Sequence record: ON287375.1
Length of the DNA: 64,000 bases
Strand: one strand, 5' to 3'
Shown here: piece by piece, positions 2,087-64,000 of the stretch
Position numbering within the stretch: the stretch's first letter is position 1
Layout: each line of letters starts with the position of its first letter
Made by a program: the position numbers and the translations under genes
Notes under the pieces: generated by a model
What the model was told of the DNA's origin: nothing
The model's database searches: none
Seen by the model: the letters and a program-made list of their open reading frames with translations, nothing else

Positions 2087-2491
2087 ATGAACTTCTTTCT
2101 GAGGGAACTAATCAATAGGATAATTAGTTACTTTATCCGTGTATCCAAAGGTGACTCATATGAAGACAAGATAGAACACTTGTTACGTAAGTCACTGTTA
2201 TTTACATTTATGGCTTTGATATTTGCACTCACTATGACTTCCAAATATCTGGTTGCCAACTGGTACCTAGAAGATTTGGAGAAGAGTCTCAACAAAGTTG
2301 ATACCTTCATGGTAGAGCAGCAAAACAACATGAACAACCTTTTCCGCATAAACGGTGATCAGTTAAAACAAATCGACGACCTCAATCATGAGAACGATGA
2401 TCTAAGATCTGATATCCGCACGTTACTGCATAACCAAGCTGTACTGGAAAAGCAGAACAAGGAGTTGCAGAAAAGGAATGGTAAGAAATAG
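2087..2491 (+). CDS. Membrane-anchored coiled-coil protein
   Basis: ATG 2087 after GGTGGA; hydrophobic SLLFTFMALIFALTMT followed by a heptad-rich C-terminus. Confidence 0.7.
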   Translation: MNFFLRELINRIISYFIRVSKGDSYEDKIEHLLRKSLLFTFMALIFALTMTSKYLVANWYLEDLEKSLNKVDTFMVEQQNNMNNLFRINGDQLKQIDDLNHENDDLRSDIRTLLHNQAVLEKQNKELQKRNGKK

Positions 2492-2551
2492 TAATTTAAG
2501 ACAAGGATGTCCATTAGTTGTTACATCACAAATTGGCAGGTATAACTAACA

Positions 2552-3973
2552 ATGAACATTGTCTACTATATCGTAAGTTCTTTTATCAAAGATAAAAATG
2601 TCGGACTATCTGGCGGTCATGGCTATTCTTACGATCCCGGTAACGAGAGTAAACGTAAGTTACAGAAAGACGTACCATCAGTTTATGGATACTACGTTAA
2701 TGGTAACTATCAAAATATCGCAGTGGATCAGATCGATATTTATAACGGTCGTATCCTGAAGCAACCAAATGAAGTAGATGCCTACCTGACCCATCTTGAA
2801 CTGATCATTAATAAATGGTTAGAAGATAAGAAGGAAGGTAATAAACTCCTTGTGATTGGTAACTGTGTCAAAGCGCACAAGATGCTTGAGAAAAACAAGT
2901 GTCCCGAAGCTTATAATGCTGAGCTGTTTAATCGTGTTTACGCTTTGATGCAAGAACATAAGAAAGATATCATTCACGATATTGAGTATTATGCTAAAGG
3001 TGGTGAAGGCCCTAAGACAGCTCATAAACAACTTGAGCTGGCTGAAGCCTTAGCTGATCTTCCTAATCCAGATACTATTACTCTTGATAAAATGGATGTT
3101 AAAGAGTATAAGAATCCAGAGATTGATTTTAATAAACTGGTTACAGCAACACGCTGGTATTTTAACACCGGTGATAAATCAACTTTCTATGATCTTGATG
3201 AAGAAGGTTATCGCCACTACACCTTTGGTCGTGTTGACCCAGATAAAAACTATTACGGTAAGGCTACGCCGGATGTGTTCTATTCTGCCTTGTACACGAA
3301 AACACCAATTAAGGTTTTGGATAAGTTATTCTCATTCTGTCAAAAGAACAGACCTAACCCATATAACATCATGGCGGCGGGCAACCTGAACCATATCAAG
3401 TCTAAGGAAATCGCTCGTGTTATCGATACGATCCCTGGGACGTTTGGTAAGAAGGAATTGGTTGCTCCAATGACGTTAGGTAATAACGAAGGTGCAAATC
3501 TGGTAGAGTTTATTGATCCACCTGGTCTGTCCTATCGTATCCGTGACTTCCATGCTAAGCTTGCTGCCATCTTCCGTTTTTGGAGAAAGCGTGATGCTAA
3601 TGGATGTTATCAGAAACATAAGTTTGTTGATATCACGGAACTGTTCTTTGTTAAAGATCCGAAAGGTAAATGGAAAATCCATCCGGACTTTACTAACAAC
3701 ACTTTGAAAATGCCGGTGACTATTGAAGCACCTGGTTGCGTTAAACCAGTTACGATCAATCTGAGTATGAAGTTTGATACTCCTGAACGTAATGCTTTAA
3801 ACAGTTTGATTGTAAATAAAGTGGAAGATATTAAAGTCTTCCTGGCTTTGGATTTCTCAGATGACTCTGGTGTGAGTTATTGCACCATTGTTAATACCCC
3901 TGAGTTTGATTACATTCATTCTAATAGCATCGCTAACCTACGGGTTTACAGTTTGAAAGAACTGGGCAAATAA
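2552..3973 (+). CDS. RNase H-like protein (phiKZ gp155-like), active site apparently degenerate
   Basis: 473 aa; N-terminal GGHGYSY pattern and position upstream of UvsX; canonical DG/E/D residues not seen. Confidence 0.5.
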   Translation: MNIVYYIVSSFIKDKNVGLSGGHGYSYDPGNESKRKLQKDVPSVYGYYVNGNYQNIAVDQIDIYNGRILKQPNEVDAYLTHLELIINKWLEDKKEGNKLLVIGNCVKAHKMLEKNKCPEAYNAELFNRVYALMQEHKKDIIHDIEYYAKGGEGPKTAHKQLELAEALADLPNPDTITLDKMDVKEYKNPEIDFNKLVTATRWYFNTGDKSTFYDLDEEGYRHYTFGRVDPDKNYYGKATPDVFYSALYTKTPIKVLDKLFSFCQKNRPNPYNIMAAGNLNHIKSKEIARVIDTIPGTFGKKELVAPMTLGNNEGANLVEFIDPPGLSYRIRDFHAKLAAIFRFWRKRDANGCYQKHKFVDITELFFVKDPKGKWKIHPDFTNNTLKMPVTIEAPGCVKPVTINLSMKFDTPERNALNSLIVNKVEDIKVFLALDFSDDSGVSYCTIVNTPEFDYIHSNSIANLRVYSLKELGK

Positions 3974-3977
3974 AAAG

Positions 3978-4020
3978 CATACTCCCTTACCCCTCCGCAA
4001 GGAAGGGTAAGGGTTATATG
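3978..4020. terminator. Repeated palindromic hairpin, likely bidirectional terminator
   Basis: catactcccttacccctccgcaaggaagggtaagggttatatg between convergent genes; identical copy at 8342-8384. Confidence 0.75.
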
Positions 4021-4025
4021 TTTCT

Positions 4026-5090
4026 TTAGTCCATGAAGGTGTCATTTAACTGACGAAGGTAAGTAGCAGCATCTTCAGATACTTCTTCTTTAGCCAGTTT
4101 AATTGCTTCTTTAACAATCGCCTTACTGGTTTTCTTTTCACCAATCTGGAGTTGAGAATCCAAAGTGATGACAGCATCACGATAACGAGCAGCAATAGAA
4201 CTCAATTCCTTCACTATAGAAACAGCACGGGATAAGCTACGACGTTTACCTTCATCGGTAGTGTCTTTATCAGCTTCATTCATTTTATCCAGAGCTACTG
4301 TTGCAGAAGCCAGAACGGATTGAACATCACCGGCGGCATCGATTAGATCACGAGTCACTATAGTAAGCTGACTAATTTTAGTTCCAGTAAACCCAGCATC
4401 CAGTCTGGTCAGTTTAGCAGCTTTCTCAAGAGCCTCAGTGGACGTATTCAGAGCCTTTAATGTTTCACCATTTGGATCAATACGTTTGATCTCTTTAATA
4501 TGACCATCAATACCAGCTAATTGGCGTTTAACAGTCCCGGCAATACGTTCCATAGTCTCACTCTGAATTTCTTCATGGCGAGCCTCTGCTTCATCACTAA
4601 GGGCTACTTCCTTGATCTTCTGGTTAATGATGACTTTATCGGCACTAGATAACCGTCTAATGATCCGAATTACTTCATGGTTAGAACCATCAGTGGCTAA
4701 ACCATCAATACCCTTAGTGGCAAGTTTCTTAACTTGTCTATTAACAACGTCACCTTCTAAAGATTTCTTAACTTTAGTGAACTCTCTAGCCGTTGCGCCG
4801 TTGATCCAATCTTTAATAGCACGCAGTAAGTTCTTGATCCATTCATAAACTTTCTGGCTACCTTTCTTTACACTGTCAAGGAAACCTTCCTGACCTTCAA
4901 CTTCAATCAGATCGATATCGTGAAGTTTAAGAACAGTGTCTGCGTATACAGCATCACCGCTTAGTTCGTTATCACCAACTTGTTCTTTAGCTAATTCAGC
5001 CAGACCATTAGTGATTGCACAAGTGTGTTCAAATTCTGAGTTAAGAGACTCAAAACCTGTAATATCTTTCAGTTCCATTTTGTTTACCAT
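4026..5090 (-). CDS. Putative internal head protein with protease-processed N-terminus
   Basis: 354 aa, helical; TGFE|SL and EGQE|GFLDSVKK...WIKNLL resemble phiKZ-like head-protein propeptide junctions. Confidence 0.55.
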   Translation of the reverse strand: MVNKMELKDITGFESLNSEFEHTCAITNGLAELAKEQVGDNELSGDAVYADTVLKLHDIDLIEVEGQEGFLDSVKKGSQKVYEWIKNLLRAIKDWINGATAREFTKVKKSLEGDVVNRQVKKLATKGIDGLATDGSNHEVIRIIRRLSSADKVIINQKIKEVALSDEAEARHEEIQSETMERIAGTVKRQLAGIDGHIKEIKRIDPNGETLKALNTSTEALEKAAKLTRLDAGFTGTKISQLTIVTRDLIDAAGDVQSVLASATVALDKMNEADKDTTDEGKRRSLSRAVSIVKELSSIAARYRDAVITLDSQLQIGEKKTSKAIVKEAIKLAKEEVSEDAATYLRQLNDTFMD

Positions 5091-5115
5091 TAGTAAGGGG
5101 CCGAAGCCCCATTAA

Positions 5116-7215
5116 TTAAAAGAGATCACCCAGAGAATAATTCTTGAATGAAACACGATGATCGAAGTGTTGGGAGTCTAAGGCGTAACCTTCCATACCA
5201 ACCATGTTCATCAGGTTCATTTTACCAGCAACAGCTTTGGTGTTAGCACCACCTGCCATTGTCAGTTTACCACCACCCAGAAGGATCTCAACTTGTTCTT
5301 TAGACCATTCCATGATGTCAATAGAGCGAGAAGTGATATTCTCTTCTGAGCCAGTATCCAGATCGATGAGCCAAATGAAGCATTCCGCATCTTGACCTTT
5401 ACGATAAATACGCGCAATGGTCTGTTTCATTTCATAAGAACGGAAAGGAGCATTCATCATGATTAACTGGTTACACATCAGTAAAGGATAACCTTCACGA
5501 AGGGTATTAAAGGTGGTGATCAATGGGTTAACATTTGGATCATTTTCTACCGTCTTAATAACTTTTTCAATATCACTTGAGTTTTCACCATGAACAGAAA
5601 TGGAATCTATCCCTTCGTTTTCAAAGTAATTCTCAAGTTCTTTGATGACTTCAATATAAGAAGTGTAGATAGCAGTCTTTTTCTGAACTGACCGAATAAA
5701 CTTAGGAAGATCAGCATGCTTGATAATGTCTCTGACAGCCTCCATGCGAGCACGAGACAGAACCCGACCTAATGCTTCACCTCTGATCTTAAGTCCCACA
5801 TACTTGACTGCAGACTTAATATGACGGAAGTATTTAAGGTCATCGCCCTTCAGTTCATTCTCAATGTCCTTTTCAACAGAGTGAGCAAACTTGGACTTAT
5901 CAGAATCAGTAAAGTTGTTATACCCATGCTTCTGGAAGTAGTTAACGATCTCGATATATTTATCCAGCCGAGCTTCTTCCTTCGAGTCACCTTCAATCCA
6001 GGAACGGTATTGATCAACATACTTTTCCCAATCGGATACATACTTAGGCATATGTTCGTTATAGAACTTAACTCGATCTTCGATGAAGTCCAGCATCAAA
6101 GCGCGAATGTTATTTAGGGTGTATTTCTCAGCCCCTGGGAACTTAACTGGAACTACCACGGGTTCAGGAGCTTCACCCATGCCTTCAACTTTGGTAATCG
6201 TAAACTTAATACGACCCAAACGGTGAGCAAGCATCTGACTAAGGAAGTCGTTATCCCGGCCATACATTTTGAGGAAATCTGTCTGGACGTCTTTATCAAA
6301 GAACTTATCAATGACAGTGAACAAAGCAAACGTTTCACGACCTTGAGCTTTGATAGGAGTGCCCGACATGAACAGTACATCAGAAACAAACTTATTAGAG
6401 CACAGGTCAATCAGACCTTGTGTTTGTTGTGACTTGTGTTCATTATAGTTATGTGATTCGTCAACGATAACTTTAATCGGTTCTTTACCCTGTTTGGAGA
6501 TAACGTTGATCAACCCATCAAACTCACGACTACGGAGATTTTCTTTATAGATAATAAAGTACTCTGCATCTGCATGATTAAGTGGATCAGTACCATCAAG
6601 AGAAGTCCAAATCTTAGGAGCTTCCTTAAAGTACTTAGTGGTCATCTCACTAACCCAAGGTGTTTGGACCAAGTGTTTAGGAACTATAATGATAGTCTTA
6701 TAGGGAGAGATCATTCTGGACCAAACTAGGCTGGTATAAGTTTTACCACTACCTGGTTCAGCGTCAAGTAAACAACCCCTTAACTGGTAACCGTATTTTA
6801 TACGGGAGTATCCTTCGAGAAACTCGCGTTGATCTGGGAACGGTCTAAGTTTAAAACTTTTGAGTGCTTTATCAACATCATAAGGTGGATAATCTTGGAA
6901 TGTAGTTTCGATCCAAGTCTTAGCTTTAATCTCGTTATAGAGTTGGTTGTACTTATACATCCCAACACGATAGCGGTCCACCTGTCGTTTATTACGGTTA
7001 GTTGTAAAGTGGTCAAGAATCCATGCCAGCTCCACCATGAAGAATTGGTGAATTTTGAAACGGCGGTTATTCAACTTAGTAATCATTCGGCTAGCAATAA
7101 CGGATGTACCGAAGTTAGACTTAAGGTCTAGCTCAAATGCATTTATATTTATACCGTTGATAACATAGTAGGAACCGACCTTTTCCACAGATGGCGAAAA
7201 GTTAAAGAATTCCAT
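5116..7215 (-). CDS. SF2 (SNF2/DEAD-like) helicase
   Basis: Walker A PGSGKT, Walker B IVDESH, motif III SGTP, motif VI QTIARIYRKGQ. Confidence 0.9.
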   Translation of the reverse strand: MEFFNFSPSVEKVGSYYVINGININAFELDLKSNFGTSVIASRMITKLNNRRFKIHQFFMVELAWILDHFTTNRNKRQVDRYRVGMYKYNQLYNEIKAKTWIETTFQDYPPYDVDKALKSFKLRPFPDQREFLEGYSRIKYGYQLRGCLLDAEPGSGKTYTSLVWSRMISPYKTIIIVPKHLVQTPWVSEMTTKYFKEAPKIWTSLDGTDPLNHADAEYFIIYKENLRSREFDGLINVISKQGKEPIKVIVDESHNYNEHKSQQTQGLIDLCSNKFVSDVLFMSGTPIKAQGRETFALFTVIDKFFDKDVQTDFLKMYGRDNDFLSQMLAHRLGRIKFTITKVEGMGEAPEPVVVPVKFPGAEKYTLNNIRALMLDFIEDRVKFYNEHMPKYVSDWEKYVDQYRSWIEGDSKEEARLDKYIEIVNYFQKHGYNNFTDSDKSKFAHSVEKDIENELKGDDLKYFRHIKSAVKYVGLKIRGEALGRVLSRARMEAVRDIIKHADLPKFIRSVQKKTAIYTSYIEVIKELENYFENEGIDSISVHGENSSDIEKVIKTVENDPNVNPLITTFNTLREGYPLLMCNQLIMMNAPFRSYEMKQTIARIYRKGQDAECFIWLIDLDTGSEENITSRSIDIMEWSKEQVEILLGGGKLTMAGGANTKAVAGKMNLMNMVGMEGYALDSQHFDHRVSFKNYSLGDLF

Positions 7216-58956: not shown

Positions 58957-59801
58957 TAACGTTTCCTTGGGACTGTCATCTTAATTGCATCAGACTTACC
59001 TTTCGGATCAGCATAAGCAAGATATTTCTTAATCTCATTATTATACAGATCTTTGAACTCACGGTGAGCATCGGCATAACCTTGGATATCATCCTGAACA
59101 TCTTCAACAGTTACACCGAAACGTGAAACTGCTTCTTGCATACCACGACGACATGTCTTATAGATATAAGCTTTAACACCAAGTTCTACTAGCTCGGCAA
59201 ACTTGTCATACATTCTTGCAGGTATAACGCTGAAGTGTTCGTCATAAGACAGAATAACTTTAGCGATCATATTAAACATCGCAGAACCAGCGTCACGGAT
59301 AATAAAGGAGTTATTACCTGTCATGGTGAAGCTAGTAAAGGAACGTTGAACCTGACCATCGTCCAAACCGTTAATTAAGCGGTTAAGACTATTGTTCATC
59401 ATACCAGAACCACAAGCTGCATAGTTATTAAAGTTATAACCATTGTTGATAGCTCGGTTGATGTTACCTGGGTAAACTTCCAAGACAGAAAGAATACGAC
59501 GACCACCTGTCATGAAGTCAGGAACGTTAACTGCGATGATACCACCGGAAAGGTTTTCAATATGTGCTGCGCTAAGATCGATGATCTCCGTAGTACCGCC
59601 AGCCACATTAAGTAAAGGACCAACCATTTTCATGATGACCTTTTCACGAATACCTTGTTCTACAGTAAACTCGTCATTCACTGGAGCCCAGATACTTCCA
59701 TAACCGTTATTTGGATTATGGAAGGCTAGCTTCAATAAATATTCAGAGATGTCGGTAGGACCATTGATCACATACTCAACACTAAAATCAACTGGATTCA
59801 C
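58956..59801 (-). CDS. Conserved phiKZ-like protein (gp33-like position)
   Basis: 281 aa, GTG start after GGAGG. Confidence 0.65.
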   Translation of the reverse strand: MNPVDFSVEYVINGPTDISEYLLKLAFHNPNNGYGSIWAPVNDEFTVEQGIREKVIMKMVGPLLNVAGGTTEIIDLSAAHIENLSGGIIAVNVPDFMTGGRRILSVLEVYPGNINRAINNGYNFNNYAACGSGMMNNSLNRLINGLDDGQVQRSFTSFTMTGNNSFIIRDAGSAMFNMIAKVILSYDEHFSVIPARMYDKFAELVELGVKAYIYKTCRRGMQEAVSRFGVTVEDVQDDIQGYADAHREFKDLYNNEIKKYLAYADPKGKSDAIKMTVPRKR

Positions 59802-59924
59802 TTGAACCCTCCTAAATACTATTTCGAAATAGACCTTTATAGAAAGGCAATGATCTCACTATCCAACCATCCTAGGTTTGTTAATAGAGAGAAGACGTCA
59901 TATGATTTAAAACTAAAAGACAAA

Positions 59925-59969
59925 CATAAACCCCTACCCCAACCTTTCGGAAGGGGTAGGGAGTAAATG
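59925..59969 (-). terminator. Member of the repeated palindrome family, closing the RNA operon
   Basis: cccctacccc...ggggtaggg hairpin. Confidence 0.65.
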
Positions 59970-59974
59970 CTTAG

Positions 59975-60901
59975 TTACATGGACACTCGAAAGAGCAATC
60001 AATAATCTCAGGGTTGCAAATCCCTTCATATTACAATCACTCAGACGGCTGTCTACGGTTGATGTCAACAACTTTCCCCTGGCATGGAGACGGACCGTTT
60101 GCGTCTGGCTTGGTACGCTATAATGCCATATAGTTACCTTCCAGTTAAAGCGCTGTTGTCTCACCCTTGAACATCGGGTGGCTGCTCACGGTTAGGGCAC
60201 AGCTGTTCTATGACGGTTCCAATGGTGCTGGAGACACCTTATTGGATACCCGTTTCGTCTACTTGTTTTATGTCGTCAGACTCGTCAGATAGTACGACAA
60301 CCCTCACCAAAGGGATTAGGGTGGTCCTCTGATATCGCATGAGTAATCTCATTACTCTCCCAGGTTATTTGAACATCAATGTTCAACCTTAAGTTATGCT
60401 TTCGTTCAGAAGGACCGATGGGTGTGTCTCCGTATCATCAACTCTCAAGCTCATCACATTTATGCATATATAGCTAGGGTTTGTTCGATACCAAGACACA
60501 TATGGGTACAGCGTTCCCAGTTAAGATAGATATTGTTTTTTATGACCGCCCAGGATGGAGTTCGGGTTCTACCATCATCGATAATCCAATAGTCACGTAT
60601 CGGAAGTGCATTCAGCTTATGCTACTGGGCATTCTATCAAACGCGCTGCTATGTCGCCGAGGCTTAACCAGGACAACACCCACCAAGAGCTACTTACAAT
60701 AGCGGACTCTCGCCGCCGTTCACTCTTGGATTTAAACCTGGCATACTAGCCAGGTATTGCCTCTGTACTTGTCTGCCCAGTAGGGCCGAACTTACAGAGG
60801 TCTTACATCCCAATACCGTTGACTGGCAAACCCCTTCCAACCCCGAATCAATCGGCTCATTGGACCAGACTTACACTTCCCAACTTAACTGGGTTACTAC
60901 A
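59975..60901 (-). ncRNA. Candidate large ornate non-coding RNA (~925 nt), family unassigned
   Basis: No credible ORF; >12 helices including two 10-bp long-range pairings; starts right after tRNA-Ile CCA and ends at a hairpin. Confidence 0.65.
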
Positions 60902-60978
60902 TGGTGGCCCTGACAGGACTTGAACCTGTGACCAGGCGATTATGAGTCACTTGCTCTAACCAACTGAGCTACAGGGCC
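60902..60978 (-). tRNA. tRNA-Ile2(CAU), or Met
   Basis: GGCCCTGTAGCTCAGTTGGTTAGAGC...CTCATAA...GGTTCAAGTCC...GGGCCACCA; closely resembles enterobacterial ileX. Confidence 0.92.
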
Positions 60979-60984
60979 GCACTA

Positions 60985-61251
60985 TCAAGCTTCTTTTTGA
61001 GGAAGACTTGCTTTGTGTTTAGCAACAACTGGCATCAGACCTTGGAAGCCATGTGGATTATATTTACCATCCACAAACACTTGAGGAACTGAAGTTACAG
61101 TCTGACCACAGATTTCACTAAGCTTAGGGGCATCGATCCCAACTTGAGTAATGTCGATGCATTCATGTTCAATACCTTCAACATCTTTAACCAGGTTCTT
61201 AGCGCGATCACACCATGGGCAATTCGGTTTGCCATAGATTACAACTTTCAT
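60985..61251 (-). CDS. Glutaredoxin
   Basis: YGKPNCPWC active site; TVTSVPQVFVDG. Confidence 0.92.
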   Translation of the reverse strand: MKVVIYGKPNCPWCDRAKNLVKDVEGIEHECIDITQVGIDAPKLSEICGQTVTSVPQVFVDGKYNPHGFQGLMPVVAKHKASLPQKEA

Positions 61252-61261
61252 TTAAATATTC

Positions 61262-61390
61262 CTAACCAAATGTAATATGGACGAAAGAGAAAAGCCAACG
61301 TAGTGTTTCAATAACGCCCCAACCAACTACAGCACAAAGTAATCCAAAGATTACAAAAGCCCCTGTCCAGGAGCCACCGCCGAAGTACAT
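61262..61390 (-). CDS. Small membrane protein (42 aa), not in the ORF track
   Basis: AAGGAG RBS; MYFGGGSWTGAFVIFGLLCAVVGWGVIETLRWLFSFVHITFG. Confidence 0.7.
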   Translation of the reverse strand: MYFGGGSWTGAFVIFGLLCAVVGWGVIETLRWLFSFVHITFG

Positions 61391-61407
61391 AGTAACTCCT
61401 TAATAAG

Positions 61408-61484
61408 TGGTCCACTCTACTGGATTCGAACCAGTGACCGATTGCTTAGAAGGCAATTGCTCTATCCTGCTGAGCTAAGAGCGG
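61408..61484 (-). tRNA. tRNA-Arg(UCU)
   Basis: ATTGC-CTTCTAA-GCAAT anticodon arm, GGTTCGAATCC T-arm, CCA end. Confidence 0.95.
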
Positions 61485-61488
61485 GAAA

Positions 61489-61577
61489 TGGCAGAGAGTA
61501 AGGGATTCGAACCCTTGTGCCCCGAAGGACAACCTCCTTAGCAGGGAGGCGACTTAAACCAACTCATCCAACTCTCT
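61489..61577 (-). tRNA. tRNA-Ser(GCU)
   Basis: CCTCC-CTGCTAA-GGAGG anticodon arm, long variable arm, CCA end. Confidence 0.95.
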
Positions 61578-61582
61578 TCATA

Positions 61583-61678
61583 TGGTGCCCTTGTGTGATG
61601 ATTCGTTTCACAACAATGGTTTATGGATAATAGAATCTGGAGATTTGATAATCCACCATTCCCTCATCACTATAGGGC
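61583..61678 (-). ncRNA. tRNA-like RNA or degenerate tRNA-Trp(CCA) ending in ACCA
   Basis: GCCCT/AGGGC-ACCA acceptor-like end, TGTGA-AACGAATCA-TCACA T-like arm, CTCCAGA loop on a poor stem. Confidence 0.45.
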
Positions 61679-61684
61679 ATTGAT

Positions 61685-61760
61685 TGGCGCTCATGACAGG
61701 GCTCGAACCTGTGACATACGGATTAACAGTCCGCCGTTCTACCGACTGAACTACATGAGC
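61685..61760 (-). tRNA. tRNA-Asn(GUU)
   Basis: GCGGA-CTGTTAA-TCCGT anticodon arm, GGTTCGAGCCC, CCA end. Confidence 0.95.
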
Positions 61761-61907
61761 TTGGGTGGGAGTCACTAGCTCCCAGGTCAGACAATGTCCA
61801 ACTGTAACTCGGTTTGATTACCTCGCGGTAACCCTGCTCTGGCATCACATGGGTCTCACCCATTATCCCCCAGACTTGGCCTACGATGGCTCCTTTGGCG
61901 CACCCAA
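61761..61907 (-). ncRNA. Candidate structured small RNA (~147 nt)
   Basis: TTGGGTG/CACCCAA closing stem; TTACC-GCGA-GGTAA and ATGGG-TGAGA-CCCAT hairpins. Confidence 0.5.
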
Positions 61908-61969
61908 CCCGAAACGCTCGCTCAAAGACTTATCGTAATAAAGCTTTAAGCAAATGTTTAAAGAAAACA

Positions 61970-62095
61970 CCCCACTTCGACATTTAAGTCAGTACTGATT
62001 CTTACTTGTAATTCAACAATCCGTTTCGGCTTACCTGACACCTTGGTCAATGTAACGCCCGGTTCGTATCTATTACGTTGGGAAGGACAGTGGGG
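61970..62095 (-). ncRNA. Candidate structured small RNA (~126 nt)
   Basis: CCCCACT/AGTGGGG closing stem; several short internal hairpins. Confidence 0.4.
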
Positions 62096-62447
62096 ATAAT
62101 TGTTTTTTGTCTGCGATAACTTAGATCCTGCTCAACTGGATCTCTTCTCCCTGAGGCTGAGAGCACTATTTAAGATTAACGCTTAGTATAACGAAGTATA
62201 TCTAAAAAGCCGAACTTAATCGGTAGTTGTTGAGTATCGTAGAGGGACTCGTTTCCAAATTGTGGTCCTGCCATTATACTACACTAGTTAGGCTGGAACA
62301 TGTAATCGCTAGTGAAGTTCCTATTCGCTGCAACGCGGCCCTAGGAAGGGAATTGGCGAACCGACTGATCCAGGTGAATGACCATGGCGTAATCATTCCT
62401 TTTGTTATCAGCCGGCTCTTGTTCTTAACAGAATATAGTAAACTCTG

Positions 62448-62660
62448 TTAATTAAATACTTTTGGTGGGACTATGGTATTTGGTCTTGGTCTGTATTTCA
62501 TCATGGTTTTGTTAATTCCTTCTTCCCCATGATTGTTCCAGATCTTGATGATTTCCTTTTCATCTAAATGATTCATCAGGAACTTGACCTTTCTCAATAC
62601 CGCATTGGTCCATAGCTTAGACTTGTTCTTAGCAGACCACCATGTTTTAAAGCTCAGCAA
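62448..62660 (-). CDS. Possible small hypothetical protein; start uncertain
   Basis: Open frame ...KNKSKLWTNAVLRKVKFLMNH...; no clear ATG. Confidence 0.3.
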   Translation of the reverse strand: MLSFKTWWSAKNKSKLWTNAVLRKVKFLMNHLDEKEIIKIWNNHGEEGINKTMMKYRPRPNTIVPPKVFN

Positions 62661-62892
62661 ACAAACCACCCCATTCCAACCAGTCTTCTGCCAACAGATC
62701 AGAGATTGAAGGAACCCAGGTATTGGATATAAGTTTTGCCGCATCGATTATTAAGAAGAATGGTTGAATCCCAGGAACATTATGAATAGTTACACATAGA
62801 CCTTTACCGTTCCAACCTTTACGCTGGTATCTTTTCCCTTCTTTAAGTCCTTCAAGAACTTCTGAGAAAGTAAGCAACTTAGTTTCTTGCAT
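62647..62892 (-). CDS. tad2: DUF2829/Tad2-like protein (anti-Thoeris nucleotide-signal sponge family)
   Basis: TFSEVLEGLKEGKRYQRKGWNGKG...WVPSISDLLAEDW signature; AAGGA RBS. Confidence 0.75.
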   Translation of the reverse strand: MQETKLLTFSEVLEGLKEGKRYQRKGWNGKGLCVTIHNVPGIQPFFLIIDAAKLISNTWVPSISDLLAEDWLEWGGLFAEL

Positions 62893-62915
62893 GACAATTC
62901 CTTAGGGAGAAAAAG

Positions 62916-63550
62916 GCCCCATATCAAACACTAGGATATGGGGCAAAGGGAATCCTCAATGGAACACATTAACCATTGAGGCAAGCAGCAACCAGCTGGC
63001 GGTTACGCTTTTAATATGGACTTGTTAGATCATATTAAAAGTGCCAGAGATTCATTCCTCTGGCTGCTCAATATAAGCTTAAACACATACGCTTGAAGTT
63101 TAGGCAGCTATAACTTCCATATCCATATTTCAGAAAACAAACATATGGAAGTAGGGTCTTTCGACCCTTACCAACCTCACTGAAGACTTCCTTGCCTTCC
63201 CTAGGAATACTATTTCTAATACCCTTAGGGAAAGCAAATGCATACCAGGAAAAGGAGTACGCACTCACCTTCTTACCTATTGTGAAGATATCAAAGCCGC
63301 GGAGCACGATCCCTTCTTTATATCTACTCGTTCTAATTGAATAGGTTATAAAGAAAGGGGGAAGGGCAGACTTCCCACCTTTGGCTAAGGGCATGAACAA
63401 TGGCTACAAAAACCCAGGCGGGGGTAATCGTAGTGAAAGCACGATGGCAGTACGTGATTCTTTAAGAGTACTTATTCCGGTCAAGATCGCTTAAAGAATC
63501 AGAGATATTAATCGTGACATAATATCTCTGGCCTGTGTAAATATTCACAG
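62916..63550 (-). other. Non-coding array of about 12 tandem hairpins
   Basis: Perfect 7-12 bp stems of unrelated sequence packed nearly end to end. Confidence 0.7.
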
Positions 63551-63643
63551 TTAAATGTGTATGAGCAATGCAACTTGAACGACAAGAAGTGAAGTGGAAG
63601 AAGTTCACTTTTTGTTACATAATATAAATAAGTTCCATTATTA

Positions 63644-63660
63644 ATTAAATAGATATTATC
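63644..63660 (+). promoter_or_regulatory. Putative phage early promoter
   Basis: ATTAAATAGATATTATC in an AT-rich tract upstream of the ORF at 63713. Confidence 0.55.
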
Positions 63661-63712
63661 AAAGGGAATATACATTGATATTAATTTTCATTAGAGTATA
63701 GAGGAACTTATT

Positions 63713-64000
63713 ATGCACATTCCAGAAATCGAAATTAACCGTATGCGTAAAATCATTAGCAGTTCTTTATCTGAACGTTTTCACGTTAATCAGGTAACTG
63801 TTGAACAAGTAAAACCAGATGCACTTCATGAAGGTCATATCTGGGAGTCTGAAGTTTATGCATTTGAATTCATTATCAATGGTACTGATCGTTATATCAC
63901 TTTCTGTACCTTGCGCCTTGGTCGTACCATGTTCACCAGGGCTAAACAAGGGATCTGTGAATCTCTTGCCAAACTAATCAGACCGCATGATTTTGGTTTG
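63713..64000 (+). CDS. Hypothetical protein, 3'-truncated by the window
   Basis: GAGGA RBS; MHIPEIEINRMRK... open to the window end. Confidence 0.75.
   Translation, partial: MHIPEIEINRMRKIISSSLSERFHVNQVTVEQVKPDALHEGHIWESEVYAFEFIINGTDRYITFCTLRLGRTMFTRAKQGICESLAKLIRPHDFGL

Follow-up and report, generated by a model that had tools for sequence, protein, structure and literature searches.

GOLLD and ROOL are large, ornate RNAs that are encoded in the tRNA islands of phages and form RNA-only cages; GOLLD env-38 is located downstream of a Met-tRNA. In the tRNA cluster of phage T4, with its species 1 and 2, and in mitochondrial tRNA punctuation, tRNAs share their transcripts with other RNAs or with mRNAs, which the tRNA-processing enzymes then set free. 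In prophage transcripts, hammerhead ribozymes have been described at the flanks of genes (Perreault et al. 2011, PMC3088659), and the hepatitis delta virus-like theta ribozymes, which are small and self-cleaving, adjoin phage tRNAs and take part in RNA maturation (PMC10879173). Here we describe the tRNA island at the right end of a 64,000-nucleotide (nt) stretch of ON287375.1 (the window), the 255.7-kb genome of Serratia phage vB_SmaM-Yubaba (genus Petsuvirus). What is new is a conserved, structured RNA of ~0.95 kb (the large RNA) that carries a canonical hammerhead ribozyme; the reading of the region as one counter-defence operon, put forward in a preliminary description of the sequence, is unproven.

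The resemblance of the large RNA to GOLLD and ROOL is one of size, complexity and context: it is longer than 500 nt, multi-junction, pseudoknotted and covarying, and it is located in a phage tRNA island. However, it carries a hammerhead, which the GOLLD and ROOL accounts compared do not report, and its hosts are jumbo phages of Gammaproteobacteria. Membership of the large RNA in either family was rejected, as neither model matched in the window (E ≤ 10) or in six relatives (E ≤ 1). The ribozyme shares with the prophage hammerheads the canonical core, the three stems, the pseudoknot between stems I and II, the phage context and the presumed role in transcript processing (PMC3088659). In contrast to these, the Yubaba ribozyme is a domain inside a ~0.95-kb structured RNA and does not flank a gene, the 5′ flank of its open stem I takes part in the pseudoknot, and its long stem III has a conserved distal loop. 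As with the theta ribozymes, a small self-cleaving type is found in a phage tRNA region. However, it is of another class, lies ~690 nt downstream of the tRNA and would trim the large RNA rather than the tRNA. The Yubaba modules exceed T4 species 1 and 2 in size and number, and a ribozyme is present in at least one of them.

The large RNA and its hammerhead ribozyme

The segment 59800–64000 of the window, to which all coordinates below refer unless stated otherwise, is identical to 183800–188000 of ON287375.1. A syntenic island with the gene order kept is present in the cultured phages Sureiya, Klebsiella N1M2, Kosakonia Kc263, Edwardsiella pEt-SU, Pantoea Survivor, Shewanella SXP01, Pseudomonas OBP and Erwinia AH04. 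Uncultured carriers of this island comprise four IMG/VR contigs (260–271 kb) and one short metagenome contig. The three non-coding stretches of the island, which hold a hairpin array, the modules A–C and the large RNA, are kept across ~13 related jumbo phages with many compensatory base-pair changes, and all three match at the nucleotide level in phages whose flanking proteins are just 72–92% identical. Rfam searches of the whole window at the gathering threshold and of 59800–64000 at E ≤ 10 returned the tRNAs and chance-level matches, with no family for the non-coding stretches; the same was true of six relatives searched at E ≤ 1. These searches gave no support for GOLLD, ROOL, group I or II introns, RNase P, tmRNA or other self-cleaving classes. 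A protein-coding reading of the stretches was rejected on the basis of indels that are not multiples of three and of the compensatory pairs.

The large RNA occupies 60901–59963 on the minus strand, which carries all features of the island, and extends for ~940 nt before the terminator. Thirteen sequences could be aligned over the ~980 nt that separate tRNA-Ile2 from the virion gene, the first alignments having been made with 11. The multi-junction 5′ domain (60901–60305) contains many invariant blocks, and 16 of 26 and 11 of 24 predicted pairs are compensated; long-range helices covary too. Cut out at a fixed length, the central domain aligned poorly and showed almost no structure, and the covariation for this domain was taken from the scan of the full alignment. 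In the ~250-nt 3′ domain (60211–59963), 24 of 52 predicted pairs are compensated among 9 sequences. This domain is missing in pEt-SU, Survivor and SXP01, in which the ribozyme is located just before the terminator. The intrinsic terminator itself (59962–59922), a G+C-rich stem of 9–10 base pairs (bp) followed by a T tract, is kept in all relatives with compensatory changes.

Between the two domains lies a type I hammerhead ribozyme (60304–60204) with an invariant core and covarying stems and pseudoknot. Its parts are arranged in the order of stem I 5′ strand, CUGAnGA, stem II, GAAA, long stem III, GUC and stem I 3′ strand. The CUGAnGA and GAAA segments, the A15.1–U16.1 pair and the GUC triplet are invariant in the 13 sequences. 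Three helices surround the core, in which stems II and III are closed by loops and stem I is open. A 26-pair model leaves 90% of the cells of the 13-sequence alignment paired, versus 28–49% with slid partners. Changes on both sides are found in 14 of the 26 pairs, a number that none of 500 shuffles reached, and they are distributed over stem I (4 of 4 pairs), stem II (1 of 4), stem III (2 of 8) and the distal hairpin of stem III (3 of 4). The six nt located 5′ of stem I form a 6-bp pseudoknot with loop II, in which 97% of the cells are paired and four of the six pairs are changed on both sides. About 40% of natural hammerheads have such stem I/II pseudoknots, which fast cleavage requires (PMC3088659). 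Cleavage is predicted to occur 3′ of C60212, between 60212 and 60211.

When the alignment was turned into a covariance model, this hit each genome exactly once, at a constant place and with 77–101 bits. The model also catches unrelated ordinary hammerheads in other contigs (19–31 bits), and ordinary hammerheads elsewhere are likewise caught by the ribozyme pattern derived from the alignment. Scans of three collections with patterns made from the letters of the invariant alignment columns added two members to the family; the other matches were ordinary hammerheads or chance.

The 5′ surroundings of the large RNA differ among the phages. It starts right after tRNA-Ile2 in Yubaba, Sureiya, N1M2 and the metagenome contig, whereas in Kc263, pEt-SU and Survivor it follows a thioredoxin gene instead of a tRNA. 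In AH04 and the IMG contigs, protein genes part the large RNA from the tRNAs, and a box TATATTATGTAA lies directly 5′ of it. Only the group of OBP, Yubaba and AH04 proved to carry the large RNA and its hammerhead; in Aeromonas phages pAEv1810 and D6 and in phage EL, neither the covariance model nor nhmmer found it in the syntenic regions. Literature searches turned up no published description. The large RNA belongs to a family outside Rfam with an ornate, covarying body.

Organization of the island

The preliminary description listed 12 minus-strand elements in the order of hairpin array, tad2-like gene, two small RNAs, tRNA-Asn, tRNA mimic, tRNA-Ser, tRNA-Arg, 42-aa membrane protein, glutaredoxin, tRNA-Ile2, large RNA and terminator. 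Eleven of them were borne out in this order, including the large RNA as a covarying structured RNA and the terminator with its covarying stem; the tRNA mimic was not. The view of the locus as RNA-rich and largely undescribed also holds, since every non-coding stretch is structured and has no Rfam match, and the covariation indicates that the non-tRNA segments are conserved structured RNAs and not mere spacers. The hammerhead, two terminator-like hairpins, the promoter-like boxes and an open reading frame (ORF) overlapping the Tad2-like gene are features outside that description.

The hairpin-array RNA (63612–63035) consists of conserved hairpins with a terminator-like end, and the start of the array, at ~63626, is past the limit of 63550 given before. 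In two folds on an 8-phage alignment, 19 of 46 and 13 of 38 predicted pairs have compensatory changes. A unit with the stem CUUUCUUUAUA/UAUAAAGAAAG and a GAGU-containing loop is present in at least three copies. A homologue of the array was found by nhmmer in Aeromonas phage pAEv1810 (E 1.5e-15). The syntenic site of this phage is a 2.4-kb unannotated gap (2458–4886 of locus L027), of which the first ~500 nt are the array homologue and the rest may hold other RNAs.

The AT-rich promoter-like box TATATTATGTAA (63626–63615) is located at the 5′ edge of the array in 12 of the 12 related loci checked. Its variant TATATTCTGTTAA (62437–62425) lies upstream of module A; the core of this second box does not vary among 8 phages, the 64-kb window contains the box a single time, and its exact pattern is found upstream of module A in 10 of 13 sequences. 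A third copy of the box core, GATATTATGTCA, is one arm of the first conserved array hairpin (63503–63533). About 25 nt upstream of the box at 63626–63615 there is an invariant near-palindrome GATAATATC (63645–63665), which might act for the divergent gene cluster when taken in the plus-strand direction. In jumbo phages with RNA polymerases of their own, the early-promoter motifs are AT-rich and ~10 nt long, and the late promoters of phiKZ contain TATG (PMC7598289). Because such AT-rich early motifs are known in these phages, the conserved boxes are plausible promoters.

Two terminator-like hairpins, each followed by a T tract, lie within the island. One, detected in a terminator scan, forms the end of the array (63064–63035), and its stem is varied yet paired in 6 of 8 phages. 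The other, recognized by reading the sequence, precedes the ribosome-binding site of the Tad2-like gene (62943–62908) and is present in 4 of 8 phages (Yubaba, N1M2, Kc263 and OBP). The island occupies one strand throughout and contains two internal terminator-like hairpins and two or three conserved boxes. Because the hairpins and the boxes subdivide it, the arrangement suggests two or three transcription units. Overall, we consider it fairly probable that the locus is a tRNA and non-coding-RNA island of an OBP-like jumbo phage, read as two or three minus-strand units rather than as one operon.

Where two small RNAs had been proposed between the Tad2-like gene and tRNA-Asn, three non-coding modules and a hairpin are found. 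Module A (62352–62200) is a structured RNA kept in 9 phages, with 8 of 14 predicted pairs compensated. It is followed by a variable cassette (62254–62105), recognized from a comparison of Yubaba with Sureiya and from ORF translations. The cassette contains a conserved ORF of 67–74 aa in Sureiya, Kc263, Survivor and AH04 and is a shorter stretch lacking this ORF in Yubaba and N1M2; DNA alignment suggests that the OBP cassette carries an unannotated copy. Module B (62098–61970), defined from alignment and fold, is closed by a terminal helix; 14 of 41 pairs are compensated in Yubaba, N1M2, Kc263, Survivor and OBP, and the single-sequence fold has z = −1.95. Alignment, pattern search and folding (z = −2.35) identified a hairpin of the array-unit type (CUUAAAG ... 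AAGU ... CUUUGAG) at 61954–61916. Module C (61912–61764) is non-coding and conserved, with 87% identity over 190 nt to the IMG/VR locus L011 and a further copy in Sureiya; it has too few divergent copies for covariation. In N1M2, module C is interrupted by an HNH endonuclease gene, which lies beside tRNA-Asn.

Only 3 nt separate the end of module C from tRNA-Asn, and no base lies between tRNA-Ile2 and the start of the large RNA. The abutment of tRNAs and RNAs described before is therefore confirmed, and tRNA-based punctuation at these places is plausible from the biology of RNase P and 3′ processing. ARAGORN and Rfam identified tRNA-Asn (GUU, 61760–61685, Rfam 74 bits), tRNA-Ser (GCU, 61577–61489), tRNA-Arg (UCU, 61484–61408) and a tRNA with the anticodon CAU (60978–60902). 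ARAGORN called neither a tmRNA nor a fifth tRNA in the window. The tRNA(CAU) is of the Ile2 (lysidine) type, as had been proposed: its body is nearest to E. coli tRNA-Ile, and in 5,426 E. coli genomes the best full-length matches (84–88%) are all annotated as tRNA-Ile, whereas matches to tRNA-Met reach 80%.

The spacer that had been called a tRNA mimic (61684–61578) forms a long hairpin, the terminal stem of which has 6 bp and precedes an ACCA. No tRNA was found in it by ARAGORN or by the Rfam tRNA model, even at E ≤ 10, and its fold is mildly better than those of shuffled sequences (z = −2.3). In the relatives, the spacer ranges from 4 to 122 nt with unrelated sequences; it is 4 nt long in OBP and Survivor, and those of SXP01 and Kc263 are unrelated. 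The missing cloverleaf call and the missing conservation leave the mimic identity unsupported. In N1M2, a 320-nt stretch that ends in a T-arm-like segment replaces tRNA-Ser and may be a disrupted or intron-bearing tRNA; this stretch and the HNH endonuclease gene lie at 4658–4977 and 5052–5639 of locus L002.

The window has a G+C content of 41.7% and uses AGA and AUA at 7.0 and 4.9 per 1000 codons. As AGA and AUA are rare codons in enterobacteria, codon supply is sufficient to account for the tRNA set, which decodes AGA, AUA, AGY and AAY, and fits it at least as well as counter-defence does. A proposed role of phage tRNAs is to counter defences that attack tRNAs (PMC10264068), and the set may help to evade them. 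In a megablast search with 59800–64000, more than 170 of the 317 matches were to Stx-converting phages, through the tRNA-Arg and tRNA-Ile-type genes only and with no toxin gene.

The Tad2-like (DUF2829) gene (62892–62647) encodes a protein of 81 aa, and the earlier assignment holds. The protein matches Pfam PF11195 over its full length (E 7.6e-17, 62 bits versus a cut-off of 25), and among structures in the PDB it matches the solved Tad2 proteins ModTad2 (9eib) and Tad2 (8v3e) at E 5e-11 as well as DUF2829 entries of the AcrIIA7 type. The family is that of Thoeris anti-defence 2, and some of its members are the anti-CRISPR AcrIIA7. Orthologues were found in all relatives; the Yubaba and N1M2 proteins differ from the other island orthologues in lacking an internal segment of ~20 residues. 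The protein is a candidate for a separate sponge of the anti-Thoeris type. The N1M2 orthologue (6436–6675 of locus L002, 79 aa, 73% identical) is labelled 'methionine--tRNA ligase' in RefSeq, which looks like a mis-annotation. An unannotated ORF of at most 98 aa, with an uncertain start codon, overlaps the 3′ end of the gene in another frame (62744–62448). Conservation of its frame and amino acids is limited to the pair of Yubaba and N1M2, in which the changes are of the synonymous type and indels are absent. It has no match in Pfam or PHROG and no homology to Tad2 C-termini.

The gene for the 42-aa single-pass membrane protein (61390–61262), recognized by its conservation, is a real gene. The protein is 61–68% identical to the orthologues of pEt-SU and AH04 and has an unannotated copy in N1M2, and in these three phages the gene is always upstream of a glutaredoxin or thioredoxin gene. 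The adjoining gene of 88 aa (61251–60985) encodes the proposed glutaredoxin (PF00462, E 1.9e-12; PHROG 22). The other island genes have no match to a defence or anti-defence family in Pfam or PHROG, and no family match came up for two further ORFs (63068–63400 and 59934–60164), as far as these were searched.

The island is flanked on one side by a divergent cluster of small genes without assignment and on the other by a virion module, which comprises two virion proteins, a thymidylate kinase and the large terminase and begins 120 nt past the terminator. Seven consecutive small genes of the divergent cluster read away from the island on the plus strand (187713–191547 of the Yubaba genome, from 63713 of the window), and none of them had a match in a Pfam search. 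The first of these genes (204 aa) adjoins the island in all relatives. On the other side, the adjoining virion protein (281 aa, DUF7484) is common to phage EL and many giant phages. The minus-strand leader between the terminator and its gene (59802–59921) is kept between the Yubaba/N1M2 and AH04 clades and includes the conserved pieces GATCATATGA and CCTAGGATGG and the palindrome CTATTTCGAAATAG (59832–59819). This segment probably serves the virion genes as promoter and leader.

Proposed function of the island RNAs

The large RNA may represent an undescribed class of large self-processing phage RNA, in which the hammerhead sets the cyclic-phosphate 3′ end of a ~690-nt RNA that acts in trans during infection, with the array and the modules A–C belonging to the same toolkit; we regard this reading as somewhat less likely than not. 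In the more probable reading of the island as two or three units, one unit would run from a promoter-like box through the ~570-nt hairpin array to a terminator, and another would contain the Tad2-like gene and the small overlapping ORF. The remaining unit would comprise a box, the modules A–C, tRNA-Asn, tRNA-Ser and tRNA-Arg, the 42-aa protein and glutaredoxin genes, tRNA-Ile2, the large RNA and the strong terminator. The 5′ end of the large RNA would arise in the Yubaba clade when the 3′ side of tRNA-Ile2 is processed and in the AH04 clade through initiation at its own promoter box. Hammerhead cleavage after C60212 would then release an RNA of ~690 nt, with the ribozyme fold retained and a 2′,3′-cyclic phosphate at its end. 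The other product would be a 3′ RNA of ~250 nt with a 5′-OH, which in three phages would consist of the terminator only. Since the 3′ domain is missing in these phages, the product common to all would be the 5′ domain and the ribozyme with the cyclic-phosphate end. Both types of ends should slow exonuclease-dependent and 5′-phosphate-dependent decay. The products would be stable structural RNAs made alongside the phage tRNAs, with a role like that of GOLLD and ROOL. The tRNAs would mainly supply the decoding of AGA, AUA, AGY and AAY, and the Tad2-like protein would act separately.

Several points weigh against this reading. The trans-acting role of the RNAs is drawn by analogy, and the transcription units, the ends and the cleavage are all predicted. 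The promoter role of the boxes is inferred from their conservation; a sigma-70 promoter scan was at chance level, as expected for a phage with its own polymerases, and the internal hairpins are putative stops for jumbo-phage polymerases. Stem I of the ribozyme has just 3–4 bp, and the 116-nt ribozyme reached no Rfam hammerhead threshold in a search at E ≤ 10, with Hammerhead_3 as the best match (14 bits versus 48.5). The low score is probably explained by the 17-nt loop II and the insert of ~45 nt in stem III.

In the reading of the preliminary description, the right end would be a single counter-defence operon, in which tRNA punctuation frees novel RNAs that act together with replacement tRNAs and a Tad2-like signal sponge. 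The tight packing of all elements on one strand, the membership of the Tad2-like gene in a known anti-defence family, the abutment of module C and the large RNA on tRNAs and the proposed use of phage tRNAs against tRNA-targeting defences (PMC10264068) are consistent with it. However, conserved terminator-like hairpins part the array from the Tad2-like gene, and promoter-like boxes precede two of the sub-units. The large RNA of the AH04 clade has its own box and no neighbouring tRNA, and in Kc263, pEt-SU and Survivor a thioredoxin gene takes the place of the tRNA before it. The Tad2-like protein is the only one with a match to a known defence or anti-defence family, and the tRNA set is explained by codon supply equally well. 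The claims of one operon and of counter-defence are therefore doubtful, and we regard such an operon as unlikely. A large RNA without a function of its own, acting in cis at the 3′ end of the tRNA and glutaredoxin transcript to set transcript stability or to insulate the island from the virion module, is quite unlikely too. The hammerhead located just upstream of the terminator in three phages fits such a region, as do the prophage hammerheads thought to process long transcripts (PMC3088659) and the start of the virion genes 120 nt after the terminator. However, the ribozyme is preceded by ~600 nt of invariant, covarying multi-junction structure, far beyond the needs of a processing signal, the AH04 clade appears to transcribe the large RNA from its own box, and the 3′ domain is itself a conserved structure.

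It is highly improbable that the non-coding stretches are decayed genes, tRNA remnants or the relic of a selfish ribozyme element kept by recent descent. Such decay would be in keeping with the HNH endonuclease genes inserted in the islands of N1M2 and pAEv1810, with the cassette that varies by the presence of a 67–74-aa ORF and with the degraded appearance of the 'mimic' spacer and the N1M2 Asn–Arg spacer. However, the compensatory changes extend across lineages that are 70–80% identical, and motifs are invariant across phages of Serratia, Pseudomonas, Shewanella, Erwinia and Edwardsiella. The syntenic position is fixed with a single copy per genome, and the indels are not multiples of three.

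For the large RNA, the cleavage prediction at single-nucleotide resolution provides a landmark that makes its expression, processing and abundance directly measurable. The locus also indicates that a canonical ribozyme embedded in a larger RNA can escape the Rfam models, and several of its conserved RNA modules are unannotated in every deposited genome. GOLLD and ROOL are a standing puzzle, their structures being known and their function not. The island adds a third, unrelated family of large RNAs in cultured jumbo phages of Serratia, Klebsiella, Pseudomonas, Erwinia and other hosts. If the reading as a trans-acting, self-processing RNA is true, the ~690-nt RNA might assemble into RNA-only structures like GOLLD and ROOL or make contact with tRNAs, ribosomes or RNA-targeting defences.

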